Origin: Ylistrum balloti
Lineage: Eukaryota
NCBI RefSeq assembly: GCF_031769215.1
Contig: NW_026782039.1
Coordinates: 372,001-436,000, forward strand
Direction of reading: 5' to 3'
DNA length: 64,000 nucleotides
This document shows, one piece after another, positions 5,218-59,900 of the stretch; the first letter of the stretch is position 1; every line of letters begins with the position of its first letter. Made by a program: the position numbers and the translations under genes. Below the pieces are notes generated by a model that was not told the DNA's origin, did not search any database, and saw nothing but the letters and a program-made list of their open reading frames with translations.

Positions 5218-7099
5218 TGCAAAATATTGATACTTTTTTCACGAATGCTTGAAATTAAGTTTTACCCGATATTTTTTACAAAAACTAATTTATGTTCTAG
5301 TTCTAATGTCACTAAATAGGAAAGAAACAAAAGCACTTCAAACACTTAATCAAAAAATTTAATATTCAATATTCAAACGAATATAACAATGTCAAAGATT
5401 AAAAAACAAAAGTTACTTTCATACATCTATACACTGTCTAATACGAGTATCTTAAATTAAATCAACATTCTATGACTCTTCTATATCACATAACTTTGAA
5501 GATTGTTATATAAGAACTTTAATTGTTGTAGACGAAAAAAATTGTAAAAATATAGCTATATACTTGTTACTATTTATCTAATAGGGAAAATGTGTGAAAG
5601 AATAAAGAATATTTTGACAACTTCATAAAGATCCTCCTTTCTATGACAGAGAATCAATTACGTTATTTTTAACAAAGGAAAATCGTTAATGATTGTCAAA
5701 AAAATAAAGATATTAAAACAGTATATGTAATATTGTTCATGCACTGAAACTGCTTAAATCCATGTTTAACGGGGAATGCATGAAAACATTTTCCTATTAA
5801 CACTTATTGACAACAATGTTTTTGCTTTGTTGTGTTTTGTTTTAAAGAAAAATTCAAAATGAGCATGTTGTAATTAAGATACAACATTTATTAACGTTTC
5901 GATGGAAAAAACATTTACTTAAAGAGGTTCTGGATTTTACTTGCAATTCACAACTTATTCATCATATTCTATCAAAATATACCCTATGAAGCTTGCAAAT
6001 CCCTGGAAGGTTTTTGTGATTCCTTCACAGCAGCCTCTTGTGTGTCAGTGAAGTGATCACAAGGAAAAAGTGGCGAATTTACGAATTTCTGTAAGTTGAT
6101 ACAGAAAGCCAGAATTTACTACATTCATTTAGAGTTCATTAACAGATTTAGACATTAAAACAATGAAAAACCTTAATAATCTGAAATAGATAAGGAGATA
6201 CAAATGTTAAGCTAGGTTTACAATTATTTTAGAACTCCTTAAAATATTTTGATGCAAAATGATGTCATGACCATATAGTTGTTTAACATGGGTAACTGAA
6301 ATATCTATGTTGTCAATGAACGTAATGTAGAGACAGGCTTTTATAATTAATACATTCATAAGTCTTTTCCATTTATAAAATATACAAAGGTATACCTTAA
6401 TGAGACAATGTACTAATCTGTTCCAATACATGACTTGCCTTTCTGTATTGCAATAGTGTGTGGTCTTGAAATATATTTTTTTAAAATGACAAAATTTCTA
6501 AACTACTGCATTGGCTTTTCCTACTGTGTAACACTTAATTTTGCTTAGATAATTATATGCATTAATGGCATTTTCTTAATTCTCAAAAAAAGTATCTCGT
6601 CAAAAGTGATGAAGATGAAAACAATTAAGAGCCATCCATAGTTTGCCTAGGGTGTAAGCCCTATCTCATATGCTAATGCCTTCTGTACATTTACTTATAT
6701 CCTTACCCTAAAAAGCTACCAAATGAACATCTTTAATCTTTAAATATTTGAAATATTCATATTTACTGATCACATCTATTACCTGTACATTGCTCCAACA
6801 TACCCATTCTATCATTTTTCTTGAAGAAACTGATCCATTATTTGTGTTATCAATCACAACACCTCAGCAAAGATCTACACAATGTTACTTAACACATTTC
6901 AGTATCACTTTCCTAATAAGACTCATAAGACTTTGAATAATTATCTTGTGATAATCCCTATCAGCAATTCCTTGTTGAATGACAAAAAAAATAAATCAAA
7001 ATATGGTAAATCAATATATAGGAAAGTTCCCATCCAATGGTGCATCTGATTTAAATCATATTAAAGTAAATCTACATCTGATTGTAGCCCCTCATCTGA

Positions 7100-9205
7100 A
7101 GTCTGAAGTACTCACCAGTGAGTGTGTGGCCATGTCTGTAATACTCACCAGTGAGTGTGTGGCTATGTCTGAAGTACTCAACAGTGAGTGTGTGGCCATG
7201 TCTGAAGTACTCACCAGTGAGTGTGTGGCCATGTCTGTAATACTCACCAGTGAGTGTGTGGCCATGTCTGTAATACTCACCAGTGAGTGTGTGGCCATGT
7301 CTGTAATACTCACCAGTGAGTGTGTGGCCATGTCTGTAATACTCACCAGTGAGTGTGTGGCCATGTCTGTAATACTCACCAGTGAGTGTGTGGCCATGTC
7401 TGAAGTACTCACCAGTGAGTGTGTGGCCATGTCTGTAATACTCACCAGTGAGTGTGTGGCCATGTCTGAAGTACTCACCAGTGAGTGTGTGGCCATGTCT
7501 GTAATACTCACCAGTGAGTGTGTGGCCATGTCTGTAATACTCACCAGTGAGTGTGTGGCCATGTCTGTAATACTCACCAGTGAGTGTGTGGCCATGTCTG
7601 AAGTACTCACCAGTGAGTGTGTGGCCATGTCTGAAGTACTCACCAGTGAGTGTGTGGCCATGTCTGTATTACTCACCAGTGAGTGTGTGGCCATGTCTGA
7701 AGTACTCACCAGTGAGTGTGTGGCCATGTCTGTAATACTCACCAGTGAGTGTGTGGCCATGTCTGAAGTACTCACCAGTGAGTGTGTGGCCATGTCTGTA
7801 ATACTCACCAGTGAGTGTGTGGCCATGTCTGAAGTACTCACCAGTGAGTGTGTGGCCATGTCTGTAATACTCACCAGTGAGTGTGTGGCCATGTCTGAAG
7901 TACTCACCAGTGAGTGTGTGGCCATGTCTGTAATACTCACCAGTGAGTGTGTGGCCATGTCTGAAGTACTCACCAGTGAGTGTGTGGCCATGTCTGTAAT
8001 ACTCACCAGTGAGTGTGTGGCCATGTCTGAAGTACTCACCAGTGAGTGTGTGGCCATGTCTGTAATACTCACCAGTGAGTGTGTGGCCATGTCTGAAGTA
8101 CTCACCAGTGAGTGTGTGGCCATGTCTGTAATACTCACCAGTGAGTGTGTGGCCATGTCTGAAGTACTCACCAGTGAGTGTGTGGCCATGTCTGTAATAC
8201 TCACCAGTGAGTGTGTGGCCATGTCTGTAATACTCACCAGTGAGTGTGTGGCCATGTCTGAAGTACTCACCAGTGAGTGTGTGGCCATGTCTGTAATACT
8301 CACCAGTGAGTGTGTGGCCATGTCTGTAATACTCACCAGTGAGTGTGTGGCCATGTCTGAAGTACTCACCAGTGAGTGTGTGGCCATGTCTGAAGTACTC
8401 ACCAGTGAGTGTGTGGCCATGTCTGTAATACTCACCAGTGAGTGTGTGGCCATGTCTGAAGTACTCACCAGTGAGTGTGTGGCCATGTCTGAATTACTCA
8501 CCAGTGAGTGTGTGGCCATGTCTGAAGTACTCACCAGTGAGTGTGTGGCCATGTCTGTAATACTCACCAGTGAGTGTGTGGCCATGTCTGTAATACTCAC
8601 CAGTGAGTGTGTGGCCATGTCTGAAGTACTCACCAGTGAGTGTGTGGCCATGTCTGTAATACTCACCAGTGAGTGTGTGGCCATGTCTGAAGTACTCACC
8701 AGTGAGTGTGTGGCCATGTCTGAAGTACTCACCAGTGAGTGTGTGGCCATGTCTGAAGTACTCACCAGTGAGTGTGTGGCCATGTCTGTAATACTCACCA
8801 GTGAGTGTGTGGCCATGTCTGTAATACTCACCAGTGAGTGTGTGGCCATGTCTGTAATACTCACCAGTGAGTGTGTGGCCATGTCTGTAATACTCACCAG
8901 TGAGTGTGTGGCCATGTCTGTAGTACTCACCAGTGAGTGTGTGGCCATGTCTGTAGTACTCACCAGTGAGTGTGTGGCCATGTCTGAAGTACTCACCAGT
9001 GAGTGTGTGGCCATGTCTGAAGTACTCACCAGTGAGTGTGTGGCCATGTCTGAAGTACTCACCAGTGAGTGTGTGGCCATGTCTGAAGTACTCACCAGTG
9101 AGTGTGTGGCCATGTCTGTAATACTCACCAGTGAGTGTGTGGCCATGTCTGTAATACTCACCAGTGAGTGTGTGGCCATGTCTGAAGTACTCACTGGCCA
9201 TGTCT
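7100..9205. repeat. Tandem array, 33-bp unit, about 63 copies, two major variants
   Basis: Unit TCTG(AAG/TAA)TACTCACCAGTGAGTGTGTGGCCATG. It explains the 742-, 718- and 267-aa ORFs in the track. Confidence 0.97.
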
Positions 9206-9499
9206 GAAAAAAAATGTCTGATATAACTAATATTCCACAAAAACACATTATAATTAATTTGGTCTATAAACAAGAAAAAAAATCTCAGTATTAACAATAT
9301 ATATATAACATAGCACTAATTATAACAAAAAGACAAACAACATCAGAAGTAGACACTTATCATCTATAAACACTGGTATAGAAATAAATAAAGGTAAAAC
9401 ATTTACATAACATTATATTTCTGTTCTGGCTTAACTATGTAACAGAACTCCAATGTATCGAATCTTTGTTACAGGTTTTAGTTGTAGGAATGCATATGA

Positions 9500-26719: not shown

Positions 26720-26875
26720 NNNNNNNNNNNNNNNNNNNNNNNNNNNNNNNNNNNNNNNNNNNNNNNNNNNNNNNNNNNNNNNNNNNNNNNNNNNNNNNNN
26801 NNNNNNNNNNNNNNNNNNNNNNNNNNNNNNNNNNNNNNNNNNNNNNNNNNNNNNNNNNNNNNNNNNNNNNNNNNN
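26720..26875. other. Assembly gap (N run)
   Basis: Run of N. Confidence 1.
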
Positions 26876-30779: not shown

Positions 30780-33700
30780 TTCAAATTCAAATTCATTTAT
30801 TGACTTTGAGCTTTACAGCTCATCAGTATGTACACAATACAAATAAATACAGTGGCAGGCAATGCAATACCGCAGTGGAGAATGGACAGAAAATGCATGT
30901 AGTTACATTTATTTTAACATTATATCATGCTATTCCTCAACTGGGTGGCATCATATATATAATTAATTAACATAGTTAATTCTTTAAAGTTCGTTGTACT
31001 CAATAATTGTATCAGCTTGAAAACTGATGGTTTTTTTCCAGTAATACAATTTTATACGTCTCTCTCTTAAAGCTTGATAAAATGGACAAATAAACAAAAA
31101 ATGATATTCGTCTTCAATATCTTCAGAATTACAAATTCTGCATATACGTTCATTTCTAACAATGTTTCGGTATCTCCCGGTTTCACTATACAGCATATGC
31201 GCTGATAAACGTAATCTAGTTAGAGCAATTCTATTTCGCTTTGGTATATATTTACATAAATATTGTTGCAATGTTAAATTATCAACTAAATGTCTATACA
31301 AAAAACATTTCGAGGAATTCTCTAATATTTCAAACAATTCTTGCCGTGCATTATCAAAGATTCTCTGTTTAACAATTGGCAGGGCAACAGACGGGTTCAC
31401 ATTGTGTTGATTCAACCACACTTCGCCAAGACCGAGTAAAAAAAGTTTGTCTTTCACAAAAGTTACCCAATTAAGAACAGTATTTCGCTGTGGCATATAC
31501 ATGAGTTCATCATAAGCAGTTTTAAGAACACAGTTCTTAGTATTTAAAAGCTTGAACCAGTATTTAATTAAATTATAATGTCTGGTATGTACAATTGGAA
31601 GTCTACCCAATTCAAAATAGATCATTACATTGCATGTTGACTTCTTAACACATAATATCCTTTTGCAAAATTCCAGGTGAACTTTCTCAATATCTATGCC
31701 TTTGCACGAGCCCCATACCTCAGATGCGTAACACAGTATACTGTTAACATATGTATCAAAAAGTTTAATCAAGGTATGGCAGTTTAAATTCAAATTTTTA
31801 CATTTTGTATATAAGGCAAATACTGACTTTCGACCTTGCCCGGATAATTGCTTTTGTACAACATTAAATTTATTTTTCCATTTAAAAACGATACCTAAAT
31901 AAGTAAACTGTTCAACGATTTCTAATTTGTTTCCATCGAAGAACCATTCCTCGTTATTACGTAAGCGGCCTCCATTTCTAAAGACAACAGTCTTAGTTTT
32001 TGCCGTGTTAACGGTCAATTTCCATGAATTCGCATATATAGACAAACTAATTAACATATTCTGTAGCTCACTGGCTGATTCTGCAAGTAGCACCAAATCA
32101 TCCGCATACATTAATAAAAAGAGACTGAGTTCTCCAAAATCATACGGCCTAATACCGTTAGCAATAAAGTCATTTTCAAAATCATTTACATACATTGAAA
32201 ACATAATTGGGGATAAAATTTCCCCTTGGGCGAGACCCATATTGTTTACAAAAAAATCGGAACATCTTCCCTTAGATGAGACACATGTCTTAACTTTTTT
32301 ATACATAGCTTTCAAAATTGATAACAGCCTTCCTCGAACTCCTAATTTTGACAATTTATACCACAATTTACAACGATCGACAGAGTCGAACGCTTTCTTG
32401 TAGTCAACAAAACAGTAATACAAACGTTTACTATCATTTAGAGATTTTGTAATAATGGCATGAAGCGCGAAAATGGCGTCAACCGTACTTGTTCCAGGAC
32501 GAAAGCCAAACTGTGCATCTGTGATAATGTCATTCGCCTCCGACCAGTCTACTAGTCTTTTGTTCAGTACAGATGTAAAAAGTTTCGCCATACAGCTCAG
32601 GAGACTTATTCCACGATAATTATTAGGATCGTTTTTATCACCATTTTTAAACACCGGGACCATCACCGCTTTAGACCATTCTTCAGGGAAACATCCAGAG
32701 TTAAATACATTATTAAAAATAGTGTGTAAGGCTTGTAGTAAAATGTCACCAGCTTCAATAAAATATTCGTTTAATAAACCGTCTAAACCATGCGCTTTTT
32801 CACGTTTTAGATGCTTAATAGCGCTTTTAATTTCGTCCCTAGATATACTACGGTCAAGCTCATCAAAGACGGTTTTCACATCAACATTAACCTCTAAACG
32901 TTCATTATCCGGCGGGTCAAGATTCATGGCTAAATCCTTGAAGTGATTAAAAAAGTCATCCAACGACACATTTGAAACATTGGATTTTGTAGTTGAGAAT
33001 TTTTTATAAAAATACCGTGGATTGGTTTTCCGTAAGTGTTCCATCATATCTCCCTCGAACTTCCTATATTGCCTTTTACATGCGGCTTCAGAACGTTTGT
33101 ATTCCCGTTTCCTTCGTATTAAAAGTTCATGGGTTACATCACATTTATTTCTATTAAAATTATTCAATGCAGTCAGGTATTCTCTCCTCAAAGCACGCAA
33201 CTGCCTGTCGAACCAAGGCTTATTATCTTGGTGAACTCGTGCACGTGGATGGATTTGTCCGATGACCTTGTCGCGCTGTCACGTGATGACCCGCGTGACC
33301 TCGTAGTAAACGGTGATAGTATTTGTAATAGTTCATGCGTGAATTTGTAAACACTGGAATTTATGGCCTCTTGTGTTGTCTCCCCGTCAATAGTAGCAAC
33401 CTGATTAATCTTGTCTATATTTTCCCTGATTGCAACTAAGCATTGTACTTTACATTGTTCATTCCATTTATATGTTGGTCTACTTACACCAGTTGACTCG
33501 TCTGTGATGGGCGCGTCCCGCGATACCCTCACACGTAGTTCCACGTGCAGGGGGGCGTGGTCAGAATATTCATTGAAGTTACATACAATAAAAGTTTTAT
33601 TATGCGGGAAAAGTGCAGGGTTCGCTATAAGATAAATCAATTGTGCTCATGCCATTTGTACCATTAAAAGTAAAAACATTTGATAACTTTTCTGGGTCTC

Positions 33701-35267: not shown

Positions 35268-35490
35268 NNNNNNNNNNNNNNNNNNNNNNNNNNNNNNNNN
35301 NNNNNNNNNNNNNNNNNNNNNNNNNNNNNNNNNNNNNNNNNNNNNNNNNNNNNNNNNNNNNNNNNNNNNNNNNNNNNNNNNNNNNNNNNNNNNNNNNNNN
35401 NNNNNNNNNNNNNNNNNNNNNNNNNNNNNNNNNNNNNNNNNNNNNNNNNNNNNNNNNNNNNNNNNNNNNNNNNNNNNNNNNNNNNNNNNN
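35268..35490. other. Assembly gap (N run)
   Basis: Run of N. Confidence 1.
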
Positions 35491-52350: not shown

Positions 52351-54271
52351 TATTCATCTTTAACACAAATAGCGATTGGAAAAATGCATTTGCGATCTTC
52401 CGAAAACGAAAACCTCTATTTCCATCATCAAGCTAGGAGTATAAATTAATAAGTCTATGTAACTATGGCTGGGATTCCCCCACTTTTATTCTATAGGAAA
52501 GTGATTTGACACACTTTAAGTTAATGTGGCTCAAAAAGGCAATTGGGACATGGTTGCATCTAATATTACTCATGTCTTTCAAGTAAATATCACTGTGTGC
52601 TGTATATAGAACGGTTTTAGTTAGGGCGTGTGTGCTATGTTCTTGGGTCCGTACAATATAATATGTACACACCTGTCCACAAATTTACAGATAAACTTTT
52701 CAGTTGATAAATGCTTATCCTTGATTGAAACATTTCATATGATGACAAATGAAAATATAGGATCTTTACATAAAACTTAAACCACGTAGTCAACAGACTG
52801 CATATTTTATTCACAGCTGGTCGCTAGTTTTATTCGTAAGATTCATGAAGAACAACGATGTAGTCCACTCTTTTGATAATTATTGGATACTACTCTAACT
52901 GAAAGCTAAAACAGTATACGAAATAAATCTCCCATACCCAGTATGATTATAATGAATATAGATCATAACGATGAACATAATACTACCACCTAGTCAACAC
53001 TCATTTATCAAAAGCCCTTGTTTAACATTCTGTCAGTTGTCAACACCTACCATGGAAATCATCATAGAATTCTGAAATGCATCATGAAAACAAGGAATGC
53101 TGATAATGGACAACAACAAAGAAAATTTCAAACTCTTTGAAGTGAGATGGGGATCTCAACCAGAGATGGACGCGGTTTAGATTAGCAAACAAAAGGCCTG
53201 CATATTAATGATAAATGATCTCTGACCCTTCCAGCCTTCTTAGCTATGTTTTATGTATTTACTGTTCAAATGTGTCCTATCCTAGACATGGAGTCATTGA
53301 TATGATAGGGAAAATTCCCGTGTCAACCTTAAGGTGACTAAGGAAATATCGCACCGGTCAAAACTTCGGGAGAAGCCAATTAAATTACCATGCTCGCCAT
53401 ACAGCTTGATTATAAAACATGTCCGTTCTGGTAGCTGGTAACGCTTTACAGGTGGCTGAATTGAAGTTATTGTGATAGGAAACAGTAGTGCGCCAGACTT
53501 GACATTGTTCGGTGGTGATCTGAGGTATGCTGTTGGACGATCCTAACTTGGTATCATTTTATGTTTCTCTGGAAGCTGAGGGCTAGGAGCAATCAGTGCT
53601 GTCATGGTTATGTCTTGCCAAAGGACACAGTTGCTTGGATAGCTCATCATCCTGTGACTTTAAATGGCAGATATTATTTACTCCAGCAATGTCAATCTTT
53701 TGGTCAATCCAAGTAAATAACCTTTTCAAATGAGAAGATGGTATGCAACAACGGAACCAACAGGCAAACTAAGTAGCATCAAATACGCCAAGCTTATCTA
53801 AAAAGAAAGAGAATATTTCACTATTAAGATTTTGTTGTTTGTTGATTCGACGGTATATCTGTGATATCTTCAATAATTCAACAATGATACAAAACGCTTA
53901 TAATTTCAGCGTTTTCTGGTTGTTGACTTATATTCTTGAGGATAACTCGTGAAGTATTGGGTAGATTTCAACTAAATGTTGCACGAATTATCAACACAAA
54001 TCACAGGTTTCAAATTTTAGTTTATAAACGGAAGATTGTGAAATAAAGAAATCCTAGTAATTTTGGAATATTTTTTATTTTTTATGGTTGTTATGCAGCG
54101 TAATGTTCGTTATATTAAAATGAGAAATTATCATTTTCATATAATTTTTCCTAATATCCAAGTATCCTACGCTTACCCTCTAATGAAAAACGAAACTTTT
54201 ATTATCATTATTTATTTTTATTCTTATTACTATTTTGATGCATCGTGTAATGTTCAAACGTTATAGATTGG

Positions 54272-54460
54272 AATACCTGTTGACTATGTGAATGTGAATA
54301 ACACAGCCACGATCGTATTCGAGGAGGTACATCCCCGCTAAGGTGTGTGTGTAATCATCTATGTTTACTATACCTGATTCAAAATAAACTACGCACATAC
54401 CCTCACGACGCCACGTCATAAGTGACTTCACATAAGACACTAGAAAATAACACATGCATA
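54272..54460 (+). repeat. Direct repeat copy 1 (about 190 bp)
   Basis: Near-identical to 56273-56461 (offset about 2001 bp). Confidence 0.92.
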
Positions 54461-54677
54461 ATTAGTGATCAATTAAGATTTTATTTTTTGTTGATTCGTC
54501 GGTATATCTGTGATACATTCAATAACGCTTATAGAATTTCTACCCAGAAATGCATTTGTGCGTTATTGGAAAGTTGATAATGATACATCAGTGTTTGTGA
54601 TGAATTTACAGACATTAAGATATTTTTGACGGTTTACATTATTTTGACCGTTAAACGGTTGTAAGTTGCAGAGGGGA

Positions 54678-54863
54678 ATGAACTTTCTACCATATATAGC
54701 TGTGTCCGTCCTTCTGCTCAGTCACTGTAACATCGGGCATGCCCAGTGGGCACAGACGTTTGGATGGGGAGGTGCAGGCAACGGTAAAAGGAGCGAAATG
54801 AATGACCCGACGACATGCAACATGGATCTACAACTAGTCAAACTCATGTCGGCTTTAATTCAG
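54678..54863 (+). CDS. Neuropeptide precursor, first coding exon (signal peptide, pQWAQTFGWGGAGN-amide, GKR); AKH/GnRH-superfamily-like
   Basis: Acceptor TTGCAG at 54671 and ATG at 54678. A 22-aa hydrophobic signal peptide ending GHA is followed directly by QWAQTFGWGGAGN-G-KR. The exon ends ...LIQ|GTAAAT (phase-0 donor). Confidence 0.88.
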
Positions 54864-56272
54864 GTAAATGGATTTATTCATTGTAAAACCATAATGAGGC
54901 TCTGTAATTTTTAAAATGTTACTTTGATCAAAATAAATTTATTATTTCTTTATATTTCTATATCCACATTGGTTTCCTCTGGTCTTCTTTTTATTATTTC
55001 GATCTTTCCAGTCTTCGAGACAGCAGGCGGAAGAAATTTACTGACAATACATGTCACCAAAAAGCATTACCGTCGTACTTGTAAATATGTGAAATAGCAT
55101 TGGTAGTTTTGTCCACTATAGAATACGTACGATCTAGGAAATACTTAATAAATATGACGAATTGTCTTGGCAGTATGACAGACAGATTAGGTGTGTTAAC
55201 TTTGTTAACTTGACTTCTGAAAATTAGAATTCTTATTCGAAACACACCGATTGGTGTACGGATTAAAGCTAACCCAATTACAAACCTGAAACATGATTCC
55301 TCTTCGCTGTTCAATTGGCTATTCAGATATACCAGTAATACTAGATTAACACCACACATTTTGACTGACAGGTGGTCGCCTGATGTAAACATGTACTAAA
55401 GTAACTTTACAATATATGATTGAGCTATTTACATTAACAATGTGATTTTTGTTCAAATTTTGTCTTTTGTACATTCTTCGAGATTACAGGTGATAGTCAT
55501 AACTTGTGGACATCCGAGGTTTGTCGTAACCTTCATGTCACTTTTTAATTCATTAAAATAGTGACACGGTTCAGAATACCCACGTTTATAACGTTCTTTT
55601 AAAATGATCAGATATATGAAATAGTGACATTTATTGAAATATGGGGCTTGTGCATCTCCCCATCAATATTTTGACATTTCTTTCGGTCACTTTTGATATT
55701 TTATCAGTCGCCTTTTAGAATTGAAAATTCATTCCCTAAACATCACTGACGAGTTCAACAAGGACGAAATTTCAAATTCCCAACGCTTAAAGACACTTCA
55801 TACAATGCGGAGAACTGTTCTATTAAAATGTTCATATTGCAGTGAGGAAATTGATCGTGCAGATGCGATTGTGCCAATCTGATACTGTAGGAAGGGTTTT
55901 GTACAAGTAATGCCTAACATCACATGTTTTAATTGAAATTATTTTCCTAATAAGCAAGACCATTTGCTAAATAATTATCTGATATCCATCCATTGTGAAA
56001 ATAAAAAGTAAGCCACTTAACCCTGAACTGCATCATGTAAACATATATCTTACTTATGCTTACATGTACTTATATGTACGTATCTATATCTTTCTTTTTA
56101 TCAATAACCTCTAACTATTTCTTTTATGATGTTACACATTTACAATGATAAAAAGTACAATTACATATTCATAGAAATGTAGATTTTAAAATTCTATTAT
56201 TACTATCATTATTTATTTTTGTTCTTGTTATTATTTTGATGTATTTTGTTATGTTCAGTTGTTATGGATTAT

Positions 56273-56461
56273 AATACTTGTTGATTATGTGAATGTGAAT
56301 AACACAGCCACGATCGTATTCGAGGAGGTACATCCCCGCTAAGGTGTGTGTGTAATCATCTATGTTTACTATACCTGATTCAAAATAAACCACGCACATA
56401 CCCTCACGACGCCACGTCATAAGTGACTTTTATAAAAAACACAAGCAAATAACACACGCAT
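56273..56461 (+). repeat. Direct repeat copy 2 (about 190 bp)
   Basis: Near-identical to 54272-54460. Confidence 0.92.
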
Positions 56462-56965
56462 TAACAGTGCTTAAAAATAAATCATACAGCTGTTCGATAA
56501 ATTTCGTTATTTCATAGAGAGGAACATTTCAGAAGAACGTCAAGTACATGTTTATATTCTCAACCGTACCCTATTCAAATGAACTAAAACATGTCATGCA
56601 GGTTACGGCAATCCATGGGGACTTAGAGTCCATCAGCAGTCTGCACCATTTGCTCTCTTGAATATCATCATTTAATATCAATTCAGATAAGAATGAATGA
56701 ATTAAGTATGCAGATCGACAGTGATGCTAAAAGCCTAAATGTCGACGGAGGGAAACAGATGTGGAGGTGCACTAGACCAAGAGTTCGGTTCATTTGTTAT
56801 TTTAATATATCTGATAATTCCTAAGTACATGTGTATATACTGAACTCGTCAGTGATCCCAAGGTCCTATCAATTTGAACAAAAATGTACAAAAGACACAC
56901 AAATGAATAGCATCTGTTTATAAAATTTGGATAAGATACAGAAGAGCTAAACAATGAATTAAACT

Positions 56966-57009
56966 GCAGGATACAGCTGTTTCGTCCTTCTAGGACTCGT
57001 CAGTAATGC
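56966..57009 (-). ncRNA. Minimal type I hammerhead ribozyme motif (intact core and stem II)
   Basis: Minus strand GCATTA-CTGACGAG-TCCT-AGA-AGGA-C-GAAAC-AGCTGT-A-TCCTGC: perfect core, 5-bp stem II, palindromic stem III and GUA site. Stem I has two mismatches. Confidence 0.7.
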
Positions 57010-57409
57010 CAAGGACCTATAATTTTGAAACCTAGTGGAAATTTAAAATTAGTTGAACGAATCTAGGTGGCGATGTGCATTAGACTCAACCCCATGATTT
57101 AATAAATTTCACTATCTCAAAACATAGGATGATCTGAAAAGAGTATAAGAGACAGAAGATATTCTAAAGCGTGCCACCGTTCAAATTAAAGAGTAACATG
57201 CAGTCATAATTGGTTAAAGATCAAACGTTTCATTTATCTATTTCAGAAATAAATGGAGAACATGCATGATAAAGTTTCTAGTTGTTTATCGAAATTTTAC
57301 TATCAGCAATATTTTGTCGTAGAAGTCATTAAATTTTAAATAGTTTCCTCTAAAATTTCTCTTGAAGGCAATTTTTTTTTCTTGGCTCTATACTAGAAAT
57401 TAGGCATAA

Positions 57410-57660
57410 TGTGTTATAAAAATCGGTGTGTAAGGAGGCAATATGGTGTGTAACCATCAGACATGATGGTGTGATATAAAAATCGGTGTGTAAGGAGGCG
57501 ATATGGTGTGTAACCATCAGACATGATGGTGTGATATAAAAATCGTTGTGTAAGGAGGCAATGTGGTGTGTAACCATCAGACATGATGGTGTGATATAAA
57601 AATCGGTGTGTAAGGAGGCGATATGGTGTGTAACCATCAGACATGATGGTGTGATATAAA
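57410..57660. repeat. Tandem array, 60-bp unit, 4 copies
   Basis: ATAAAAATCGGTGTGTAAGGAGGCGATATGGTGTGTAACCATCAGACATGATGGTGTGAT. Confidence 0.95.
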
Positions 57661-58255
57661 TATCAATGTGAAAGGAACTTTTATAATTCCAAATATATGT
57701 GGAACTTTTACAATTCCAAAGATATGTGGAGAGGACATAATTTATAACCTTCTAATGACATCTGGAAAGTTTAATCCTCTAAACATACACGGTATATGTA
57801 ATCTTCTATTTCTACCTTTTTTTTAAGAAATGATCTTTCATGCACGTTTTAATTTTGTAAGCGTTTCATTCCATTGTCAACTTCCAATTGATGTGAAGGT
57901 AATCCGGGACAATTCCCCAGTACTGTGTCGTATTTCACAGCTTATCGTACCTTTATTCTTTTTCTTTATCTATTTTATTTATTGACAGTAAACTTAATTT
58001 GATTGTGCAAAAAGAAATATAACAGTACACCGTCTAAAGTTATAGGGGACAGTAATTGGTTAACCATTATTGGATCAATATCACTAAAATACACTATAGA
58101 GAATTCTGTGTGATTCATGTTGTACCGTTACAGAATAACAGCTCCTAGTCATGACTTTTAAAACTGGAATAGAGCTGCCATGTTCTCTACTTCAGCAAAC
58201 CTTTGTCATCAGTCACGTATGTACTGCAACTAATCTTAAAACTTCATTGTTTCAG

Positions 58256-58321
58256 CACGAATTTAAAAGACTAAAGACCTGTAGCGAACTGAAACTGCCC
58301 CGAGACTTACTGGAAATTTAA
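58256..58321 (+). CDS. Neuropeptide precursor, final coding exon (HEFKRLKTCSELKLPRDLLEI-stop)
   Basis: Branch-like CTAAT, pyrimidine tract and TTTCAG acceptor in phase 0. It completes the C-x23-C associated peptide. AATAAA lies at 58490. Confidence 0.72.
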   Translation, partial: HEFKRLKTCSELKLPRDLLEI

Positions 58322-58734
58322 AGGTAACCAATTCACTGATTCACTATTTCTACGTCTAATAACGTCACGCGCACCCTGTAGAACGGACAGTAGGAGTTTC
58401 ATTTTTTCATCACATTCCGCACGTGCACGATATGTCACTCTATGTGCAATTACACAATTATCTATTGTATCTTCTGAACTTCCAATTACAATAAATATGT
58501 ATACACACGTTTATTACCAAAACCATATTTATCTATTTATTTAAAAAAAAAAAAAAAAACACAAGTGCAGCAAACATCAATATACCGAGGAGGCAGGAAT
58601 ACATGATATCAACAGAACTGGAAAATCATGGCTCTCAATCACAGATCAATAATTGTACAAAAGACACACAAGTGAATAACACCTTTTAATAAAATTAGAG
58701 TTAGATACAGTAGAACCAAACAATAAACTAAACT

Positions 58735-58778
58735 GAATTGTACAGCTGTTTCGTCATTTAAGGGCTCGTCAGAAATGC
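58735..58778 (-). ncRNA. Hammerhead ribozyme motif, degenerate
   Basis: Minus strand GCATTT-CTGACGAG-CCCTTAAATGA-C-GAAAC-AGCTGT-A. It lies in a 58655-59060 repeat copy homologous to 56480-57130. Confidence 0.55.
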
Positions 58779-59382
58779 TAAGGGACTTAAATTTGAAGTC
58801 TAGAATTCAAATTAGGAAAATCCAAAGTGATTGAAGGAAAAGTCTATCTATTCGGGGAGGAGAACTAGCCCCATGATTAAATAAATTTCGGAATTTTCAT
58901 GTATCAGATAATTTTAGAACAGCGTCAAGTACAGGTGTATATTCAGGACCGTGCCTCTATTGGAATGAATTAAAACGTGACATGTAGGTTACGGCAAACT
59001 TCAGGGACATTAGGTCCACCTGTAGTGTCAACCAGCTGTTATCTCATAGATTGTACAACACACAGGTAAATGAACATCCAGATATGATAGAAACTGATCG
59101 ATAATTTTACGAATCTTGGCAAAAGCATTTCCTTTTTATGTGATAAAAATTAACGTTTACATTTCATGCGAGATTTATTTTGATATTTTGATACTACCTA
59201 GAGAATGGTTTGTAGTGACGCAGTAAAAATCATTTCATAGCAGACTCTGAAAAGCAATTGTCTGAACATTGACGTATAACTGTAGTTGTCTTGTTTTCTA
59301 TGTGTAATCTGACGCAATTGAATTGTATTACACTTTTGAATTTGTTTGGTTCTCATTTGTTAAACCTAATAAATAAACACCT

Positions 59383-59900
59383 TGTTCAGTTCTTTATTCT
59401 CATAACTTAATACATAAGTGTTGAGAAGGTACAACATGTGGTTATACAGTAATGTATAGATAGCCTACACATTCTATACAATGTACAACAGGTTACCCAG
59501 GAGGGTTTAGTTTATCTTGAAGAATAGTAAGAAATTTACATAGGTTGTGCAATGTACTGAAGTTTGAACAGTATATAAAGTAGAAATTAATACAATTTGG
59601 TATGTTACGATATCGAGGGTGGATATATAAATTTCTGTGCTGAACCAGTTCTGGATTTTGACATTTAAATATATAATGGAATTCATCCCCTATTTCATTT
59701 GAATCACATATCAAACACTTCCTGTCTTCTCTGGGTACATTTCTCCGTCTTCCAGTTTCTATGGGGAGATTGAAGTTACATGTTCTAAATTTTGTTAAGA
59801 TACTTCTGTTTTAATAGGTAGTTTGATTAGATAACTTTCAAGTTTCAGTACATTTCTAAACATTCTGTAGTTTATACATTTAGAAATAGTCATAATATTA
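59383..59900 (-). mobile_element. RTE-X-like LINE 3' fragment
   Basis: Minus strand LPIETGRRRN..CLICDSNEIGDEFHYIFKC, the same C-terminal motif as the 31-kb LINE. The tail AATAAAGAACTGAAC lies near 59385-59400. Confidence 0.75.

Follow-up and report, generated by a model that had tools for sequence, protein, structure and literature searches.

Positions 54678 to 58321 of a 64,000-nt stretch of contig NW_026782039.1 from the scallop Ylistrum balloti (assembly GCF_031769215.1, positions 372,001 to 436,000; the whole stretch is called the window below) carry a two-exon gene for a neuropeptide precursor. Our computational analysis indicates that this is very probably the pectinid GNamide prepropeptide gene and the molluscan orthologue of spiralian gonadotropin-releasing hormone (GnRH) type 2, which is known in Platynereis as AKH2 or GnRH2/GnRHL4 and corresponds to the proto-AKH of Li et al. 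2016. The gene and its peptide were already known; their assignment to the molluscan GnRH type 2/proto-AKH group is well supported and corrects the published inference that this paralogue was lost. Given that an oyster GenBank record was already named protoAKH, the advance lies in the assignment and not in discovery.

Relationship of GNamide to spiralian GnRH type 2 and AKH precursors

The supplement of Li et al. 2016 contains three annelid and brachiopod precursors, namely Capitella "proto-AKH" (QLTQSLGWGSAGSP-GKR), Platynereis "proto-AKH-2" (QLTQSLGWGSAGSS-GKR; this is GnRH2/GnRHL4, formerly AKH2) and Lingula "proto-AKH" (QWHQTLGWGAAGMV-GKR). Their peptides and that of the scallop have in common the core pQ-[W/L]-x-Q-[T/S]-x-G-W-G-x-A-G, which is invariant in the molluscan members. 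A profile of eight full-length molluscan GNamide members (alignment A3) was compared by hhalign with these three precursors, with Platynereis GnRHL3, with oyster AKH (alignment A4) and with locust AKH-1. Probabilities of 97.9% (E 5.9e-13), 97.5% (E 8.7e-12) and 97.4% (E 1.6e-11) were obtained for the Lingula, Capitella and Platynereis precursors, respectively, and every one of these matches spanned both the mature and the associated peptide. The Platynereis match took in the second Cys; that of Capitella stopped slightly before this residue, where the sequence ends, and that of Lingula reached the intron, at which the read-through sequence had been cut. The Platynereis score was 59.9 against a shuffle maximum of 17.8, and the associated peptide alone still scored 23.6 against 16.1. 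Platynereis GnRHL3 was matched more weakly (78%), and in the associated peptide only. The scallop protein keeps C47, L60, E64, R67 and C71, that is, the two-Cys associated peptide with the L...E..R...C motif; the spiralian GnRH type 2 precursors likewise have a two-Cys associated peptide with ...L-x-x-E-x-x-R-x-x-x-C. Moreover, Platynereis GnRH2/GnRHL4 (pQLTQSLGWGSAGSS-amide) and the Capitella and Lingula peptides combine the common core with an extended amidated tail and GKR. The scallop peptide differs from them in its length (13 versus 14-15 residues), in Trp at position 2 and in its Asn-amide C-terminus; a GnRH type 2 receptor is established for Platynereis only.

Intron position was compared across the family, as the sequence-only reading (the earlier account of this DNA) had proposed, and place and phase proved to be the same in bivalves, Gigantopelta, three further loci (L001-L003) and the oyster AKH gene. 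The scallop intron (...LIQ|HE, phase 0) lies between the two Cys, and the genes checked in bivalves, Gigantopelta and L001-L003 have a phase-0 intron 15-16 residues past the first Cys. In Gigantopelta the junction is LLSK|LETQRVRLC, with an intron of 14.7 kb; one of the three loci uses a GC donor, and exon 2 was not found within 8 kb in L001 and L002. Read-through sequence gave ...LVQ|V in the oyster GNamide genes and ...LLQ|V in Lingula, where the intron lies about 17 residues past the first Cys. According to genomic read-through predictions, the oyster AKH gene is interrupted right past ...VIQ, which aligns with the residues that come before the intron of the GNamide gene in oyster (...LVQ) and scallop (...LIQ). 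In Crassostrea gigas AKH, ...VIQ|KQVDRLVAC aligns with ...LIQ|HEFKRLKTC of the scallop, and the phase-0 introns of the two genes fall at one and the same residue. The same phase-0 intron was reported by Li et al. 2016 for insect AKH, corazonin and annelid genes.

That the GNamide precursor belongs to the AKH/GnRH superfamily, as had been claimed from the sequence alone, is supported by Pfam, by profile-profile matches and by this common phase-0 intron. When the window protein was searched in its spliced form, PF06377 (Adipokin_hormo) was the one Pfam family that matched (18.6 bits, E 0.0027). The match vanished when exon 1 was scanned alone and thus needs exon 2 joined to it. With a gathering cut-off of 22.9 bits, the oyster orthologue was above the threshold (26.0 bits), and the Mizuhopecten protein reached 14.5 bits. 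When the molluscan profile was aligned with oyster AKH, hhalign gave a probability of 84% (E 7e-6, score 33), whereas the scores of 200 column shuffles averaged 10 and never exceeded 18.7; without signal peptides the probability was 88%. BLASTP likewise related the oyster protoAKH to oyster AKH (31% identity over 72 residues, E 3e-7), and locust AKH-1 (...RLIQAEARKMSGC) was aligned by hhalign at 54% probability. The protein-language-model neighbours of the Mizuhopecten protein were progonadoliberin, pro-corazonin and AKH clusters (0.91-0.93). These neighbours were the only lead from the GNamide precursor to corazonin, and the Pfam corazonin and GnRH models did not match the window protein at E up to 10.

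Several observations weigh against this placement. The score of the window protein falls short of the PF06377 cut-off, and six other full-length members (Gigantopelta, Solemya, Patella, Haliotis, Nucella and Babylonia) gave no PF06377 match, so that single-sequence Pfam evidence is confined to oysters and scallops. The associated peptides alone matched oyster AKH weakly (15.5, E 0.005), at a score that equals the shuffle maximum. Profile similarity of the associated peptide, whose absence the sequence-only reading had named as a refutation, was clear for Platynereis GnRH2, and for oyster AKH it reached only the top of the shuffles. GNamide also lacks three of the six hallmarks of a true AKH given by Li et al. 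2016. Whereas pGlu1, an aliphatic or aromatic residue 2 and Trp8 are represented by Q1, W2 and W8, the scallop peptide has 13 residues and not 8-10, Q-T in place of FS/FT/YS at positions 4-5, and an end in WGGAGN-amide in place of W-, WG- or WGX-amide. With three of six hallmarks and more than 10 residues, it therefore falls into the 'proto-AKH' class of Li et al. 2016. Finally, Andreatta et al. noted that the superfamily has no conserved C-terminal propeptide region and yields no clean ligand phylogeny.

Molluscan AKH (GnRH type 1) is exemplified by that of C. gigas (pQVSFSTNWGS-amide; KM205073; receptor AKHR1), which has the same precursor architecture as GNamide and is its paralogue in the same oyster genome, but is a 10-mer with all of the AKH hallmarks; it activates AKHR1 at 4 nM (Li et al. 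2016). Arthropod AKH, ACP and corazonin and vertebrate GnRH, too, are arranged like the scallop precursor, with a single pGlu, Trp-containing amidated peptide after the signal peptide, then GKR and an associated peptide. The scallop peptide differs from these relatives in being longer, in having no FS/FT at 4-5 and in its Gly/Ala-rich tail; neither the GnRH nor the corazonin model of Pfam matches its precursor at the sequence level.

Two profile searches, one exhaustive and one word-based, served to determine the distribution of the family. Among named species, family members were found in bivalves (scallops, oysters, Solemya velum and Potamilus streckersoni) and in gastropods (Gigantopelta aegis, Patella caerulea, Haliotis asinina, Nucella lapillus, Babylonia areolata, Biomphalaria pfeifferi and B. 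glabrata), and several further ENA/Logan contigs carry the family as well. All records except those of Mizuhopecten and oyster are labelled hypothetical or uncharacterised. With members in at least six gastropod genera, the family is therefore not bivalve-specific.

In the literature, GNamide appears as an orphan. Zhang et al. 2018 (PMC5996578) named it and called it scallop-specific, without confirmation by mass spectrometry (MS); De Oliveira et al. 2019 repeated the scallop-specific label, and Réalis-Doyelle et al. 2021 (PMC8398477) called it bivalve-specific. If these descriptions were taken at face value, GNamide would be a scallop- or bivalve-specific orphan whose likeness to AKH and GnRH had arisen by convergence from a generic precursor architecture (a signal peptide, then a pQ peptide with GKR, then a helical spacer that contains Cys), and both the want of a Pfam AKH match in most family members and the weak associated-peptide-only comparison with oyster AKH agree with such an explanation. 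We nevertheless consider it highly improbable. It does not fit a family spread over four bivalve orders and six or more genera of gastropods, nor the 97-98% profile matches to annelid and brachiopod GnRH type 2/proto-AKH over both peptide and associated peptide, nor an intron that has the position and phase of that in the oyster AKH gene, nor an oyster orthologue that exceeds Pfam's curated AKH threshold. The sequence-only reading had described the gene as an extra, highly diverged paralogue: a paralogue of this family it is, but an old and very conserved spiralian one.

Two side observations on the molluscan family were made. Contig ctg62467 of ENA ERZ25084522 (460,743 bp) carries two family paralogues (L005 and L006) about 165 kb apart on opposite strands, with the peptides QWSQTFGWGGAGN and QFTHSTGWGGAGN, and Biomphalaria has a related QWSKS[T/I]GWGGAGN form; the pair and the related form suggest a lineage-specific duplication. 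In addition, the NCBI model of Gigantopelta aegis XP_041370832.1 (locus L004, 10001-10093) adds a 30-residue N-terminal exon before the apparent true start M-VTLVRC..., and is probably over-extended.

Gene model and mature peptide

The features of the gene are collected in Table 1. When the two exons were joined, a canonical GT-AG intron with phase 0 at both junctions was obtained (the acceptor at 58256 reads TTTCAG|CAC and is polypyrimidine-rich), and the spliced product is a protein of 83 amino acids that consists of a signal peptide, QWAQTFGWGGAGN, G-K-R and a 45-residue associated peptide, with 23 residues between Cys47 and Cys71. A search of 5.8 billion proteins with exon 1 matched the Mizuhopecten yessoensis GNamide at E 8e-28 and also recovered the Magallana gigas "ProtoAKH preprohormone". 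Exon 2 was identical at 16 of 21 positions to residues 64-84 of the cDNA-derived Mizuhopecten GNamide, with the stop in the same place. All 17 positions that are invariant in the eight full-length molluscan members are kept in the scallop precursor; three of them (E64, R67 and C71) are supplied by exon 2. Given the Mizuhopecten matches of both exons and the invariant residues kept, these exons are not a chance open reading frame (ORF). By these sequence comparisons the two-exon model is confirmed as a real gene, and the earlier description of the precursor, with its exon junctions and Cys spacing, held on reading the junction and on comparison with Mizuhopecten. No other gene of AKH-like architecture turned up when the window was scanned for the motif in six frames.

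Table 1. Features of the GNamide gene of Ylistrum balloti (window positions, counted from its first letter)
Feature	Position	Strand	Description
Exon 1	54678-54863	+	ATG at 54678, 62-codon open frame, then CAG|GTAAAT
Signal peptide	54678..54743	+	22 codons, M1-A22, last residues G-H-A; predicted from translation
Mature peptide QWAQTFGWGGAGN	54744..54782	+	13 codons, residues 23-35; predicted product pGlu...Asn-amide
Gly-Lys-Arg	54783..54791	+	G36-K37-R38, amide donor and dibasic convertase site; invariant among family members
Associated peptide, first part	54792..54863	+	contains Cys47 and ...ALIQ; closes exon 1 (alignment A3)
Intron	54864..58255	+	3392 nt, GTAAAT...TTTCAG, phase 0; packed with interspersed and tandem repeats
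Exon 2	58256..58321	+	HEFKRLKTC..., 21 codons with second Cys71; TAA at 58319-58321
AATAAA	58490..58495	+	candidate polyadenylation signal about 170 nt past the stop, from sequence reading alone

The sole public sequencing run found to contain the stretch is of genomic DNA, and neither transcript nor peptide evidence from Ylistrum balloti is at hand, which counts against the reading given here. In that run, an even depth of about 11 was seen throughout exon 1 and on into the 5' portion of the intron; exon 2 was uncovered. Three differences from the window were seen in exon 1 (F3V, L14V and a silent change at I19), all of them inside the signal peptide. One could suppose that the gene model is wrong, with another 3' exon in use, or that the locus is a non-functional, unexpressed copy in this species. 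No RNA evidence was obtained that would speak otherwise, the DNA run gave no contig over exon 2, and a possible donor (AG|GTAACC) stands directly after the stop codon. Such an error is very improbable: two intact exons with consensus splice sites are present, exon 2 fits the cDNA-derived Mizuhopecten C-terminus to the same stop and brings three family-invariant residues, and the variants in the DNA run are confined to the signal peptide. Upstream of the start, at 54660-54677, the sequence ...TTGTAAGTTGCAG|AGGGGA-ATG resembles a splice acceptor, and a non-coding 5' exon may therefore lie further upstream.

The sequence-only reading had suggested that the peptide might equal the bivalve GNamide, and this was borne out. 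The Mizuhopecten (Patinopecten) yessoensis GNamide precursor (A0A346GAW9 / MH045254; PMC5996578) is an orthologue with 81% overall identity to the window protein and has the same mature peptide, the same two Cys and the same C-terminal stop; the substitutions (about 19%) lie mostly in the signal peptide and spacer. The 'protoAKH preprohormone' of Magallana (Crassostrea) gigas (Cragi-GNamide; A0A455GC48 / ANT96595.1; PMC8398477) is about 48% identical to the window protein over the aligned stretch and agrees with it in the 13-mer, in the GKR that follows, in having two Cys in the associated peptide and in the place of the intron. The oyster protein differs from that of the scallop in having a KRR site past the second Cys of its associated peptide, and in passing the Pfam AKH cut-off.

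The mature peptide is known by MS from the oyster. In the supplementary table of PMC8398477, oyster ganglia yielded Q(-17.03)WAQTFGWGGAGN(-.98), a pyro-Glu and amidated peptide of 1360.5948 Da that starts at the Gln right after GHA, and the 41-residue oyster associated peptide was likewise detected. Our computed mass for the 13-mer pQWAQTFGWGGAGN-amide is also 1360.5948 Da, compared with 975.42 Da for a 10-mer, and QWAQTFGWGGAGN is letter-for-letter the same in the scallop and oyster proteins; the 13-mer proposed from the sequence thus exists in identical form in the oyster. The main text of PMC8398477 gives the oyster peptide as pQTFGWGGAGN-amide. Were this 10-mer the bioactive product, the signal peptide would have to be cleaved after Q-W-A, and its N-terminus is the other point that could be held in its favour. 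A peptide that begins with pQTF... would resemble arthropod corazonin. The MS table and the mass calculation reject the 10-mer; as the active product it is extremely unlikely, since the table of the same paper lists the 13-mer, the listed mass equals that computed for the 13-mer and not that of the 10-mer, and Q-W-A is invariant or near-invariant in the molluscan members whereas their signal peptides are not. Because its own MS table and the computed mass fit the 13-mer, the 10-mer in that main text is a slip, one that could mislead peptide synthesis.

Proposed processing, receptor and published work

By analogy with the oyster, in which the processing of the identical peptide has been shown by MS, the 83-amino-acid scallop product would enter the secretory pathway and be cut by signal peptidase after G-H-A, whereupon the exposed Gln would cyclise to pyroglutamate. 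A prohormone convertase would then cut after K-R, a carboxypeptidase would take off K-R, and the Gly would be used for C-terminal amidation, so that pQWAQTFGWGGAGN-amide and a Cys-bridged associated peptide would result. Oyster GNamide transcripts were detected only in visceral ganglia (PMC8398477), and we infer ganglionic expression for the scallop gene as well. The peptide probably serves as a neurohormone of ganglionic neurons that would act on a rhodopsin-like G-protein-coupled receptor (GPCR) of the AKH/GnRH type.

With regard to the receptor, Andreatta et al. found that in Platynereis GnRH2/GnRHL4 alone is the ligand for the two receptors of the AKH/GnRH type, GnRHR1/AKHR1 and GnRHR2/AKHR2. 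In the oyster, AKHR2 (KM205070) has the gene structure of AKHR1, responded neither to oyster AKH nor to corazonin/GnRH, and is an orphan (Li et al. 2016). By analogy, the molluscan receptor for GNamide would be an AKH/GnRH-type GPCR, with the orphan oyster AKHR2 and its scallop orthologue as the prime candidates. Against this stands that the assignment of a receptor in molluscs is pure analogy, and that Li et al. 2016 report no test of the GNamide peptide on AKHR2. The GNamide system would then operate alongside both the corazonin-type 'GnRH' system of molluscs, with peptides of the pQNYHFSNGWQP-amide type, and their classical AKH (GnRH type 1) system, in which AKH is paired with AKHR1. To the full proposal, in which molluscs never lost GnRH type 2 and GNamide, conserved almost letter for letter in bivalves and gastropods, is the missing AKHR2-type ligand, we give an even chance. 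If it is true, two parallel GnRH-type axes (AKH/AKHR1 and GNamide/AKHR2) would derive from a duplication in the trochozoan ancestor and form a counterpart of the arthropod AKH/ACP split.

According to Thiel et al. 2021, a GnRH type 2 paralogue had yet to be described from molluscs, and a secondary loss was inferred. If GNamide is GnRH type 2, and as it is widespread in gastropods too, that inference is contradicted. The mollusc neuropeptidome papers, with their orphan GNamide, and the comparative GnRH literature, with its loss of type 2, have not been joined, although the sequence evidence indicates that they concern the same thing. In the searchable full-text literature, papers that use the name GNamide make no link to AKH or GnRH; full-text searches for QWAQTFGWGGAGN, for related peptide strings and for 'protoAKH' returned nothing beyond the oyster paper PMC8398477, and the connection is absent from the text and supplement of Li et al. 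2016. Whoever gave the oyster GenBank entry the name "protoAKH preprohormone" had evidently noticed this connection. The assignment of the orphan to the superfamily, anticipated by the sequence-only reading, stands; the link itself was already implied by that name. The assignment gives GNamide a place in the evolution of these hormones and predicts the class of its receptor, and the search for a ligand of oyster AKHR2, which has been an orphan since 2016, is reduced to an experiment with one peptide.

Repeats and other features of the window

The surroundings of the two exons are rich in repeats. A 230-nt direct repeat has one copy a short way upstream of exon 1 (54199-54428) and another inside the intron (56200-56429), with 93% identity between the two; the same ORF on the minus strand (MTWRREGMCVVYFESG...) is present in both, and the repeat is probably an interspersed element. 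Also inside the intron, at 57410-57709, is a tandem array with a 60-nt period and about five units of 74-98% identity. Sequences at 56918-57071 and 58612-58765 belong to an extremely abundant repeat, for which the summed contig depth in the DNA run was about 254,000 and 14,500, respectively, compared with about 11 in the flanks; around 56971-57009 there are many head-to-tail joints that step back by 36-39 nt. Two copies of a 144-nt sequence (56882-57025 and 58651-58794, 80% identity) stand on either side of exon 2. Rfam at its gathering threshold gave no match in 53500-59500, including the repeat region for which a hammerhead had earlier been suggested.

Elsewhere, the window contains two N runs (26720-26875 and 35268-35490) and two long ORFs. 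The one at 6979-9207 (+) is a single ORF of 742 amino acids with 14 colipase-like Cys-rich repeats (PF15083, E 4e-55) and a teneurin-type EGF match; its product is a secreted repeat protein unrelated to the GNamide gene. The other, at 30984-33200 (-), is 738 amino acids long, includes a reverse transcriptase domain (PF00078, E 6e-36) and probably represents a retrotransposon.

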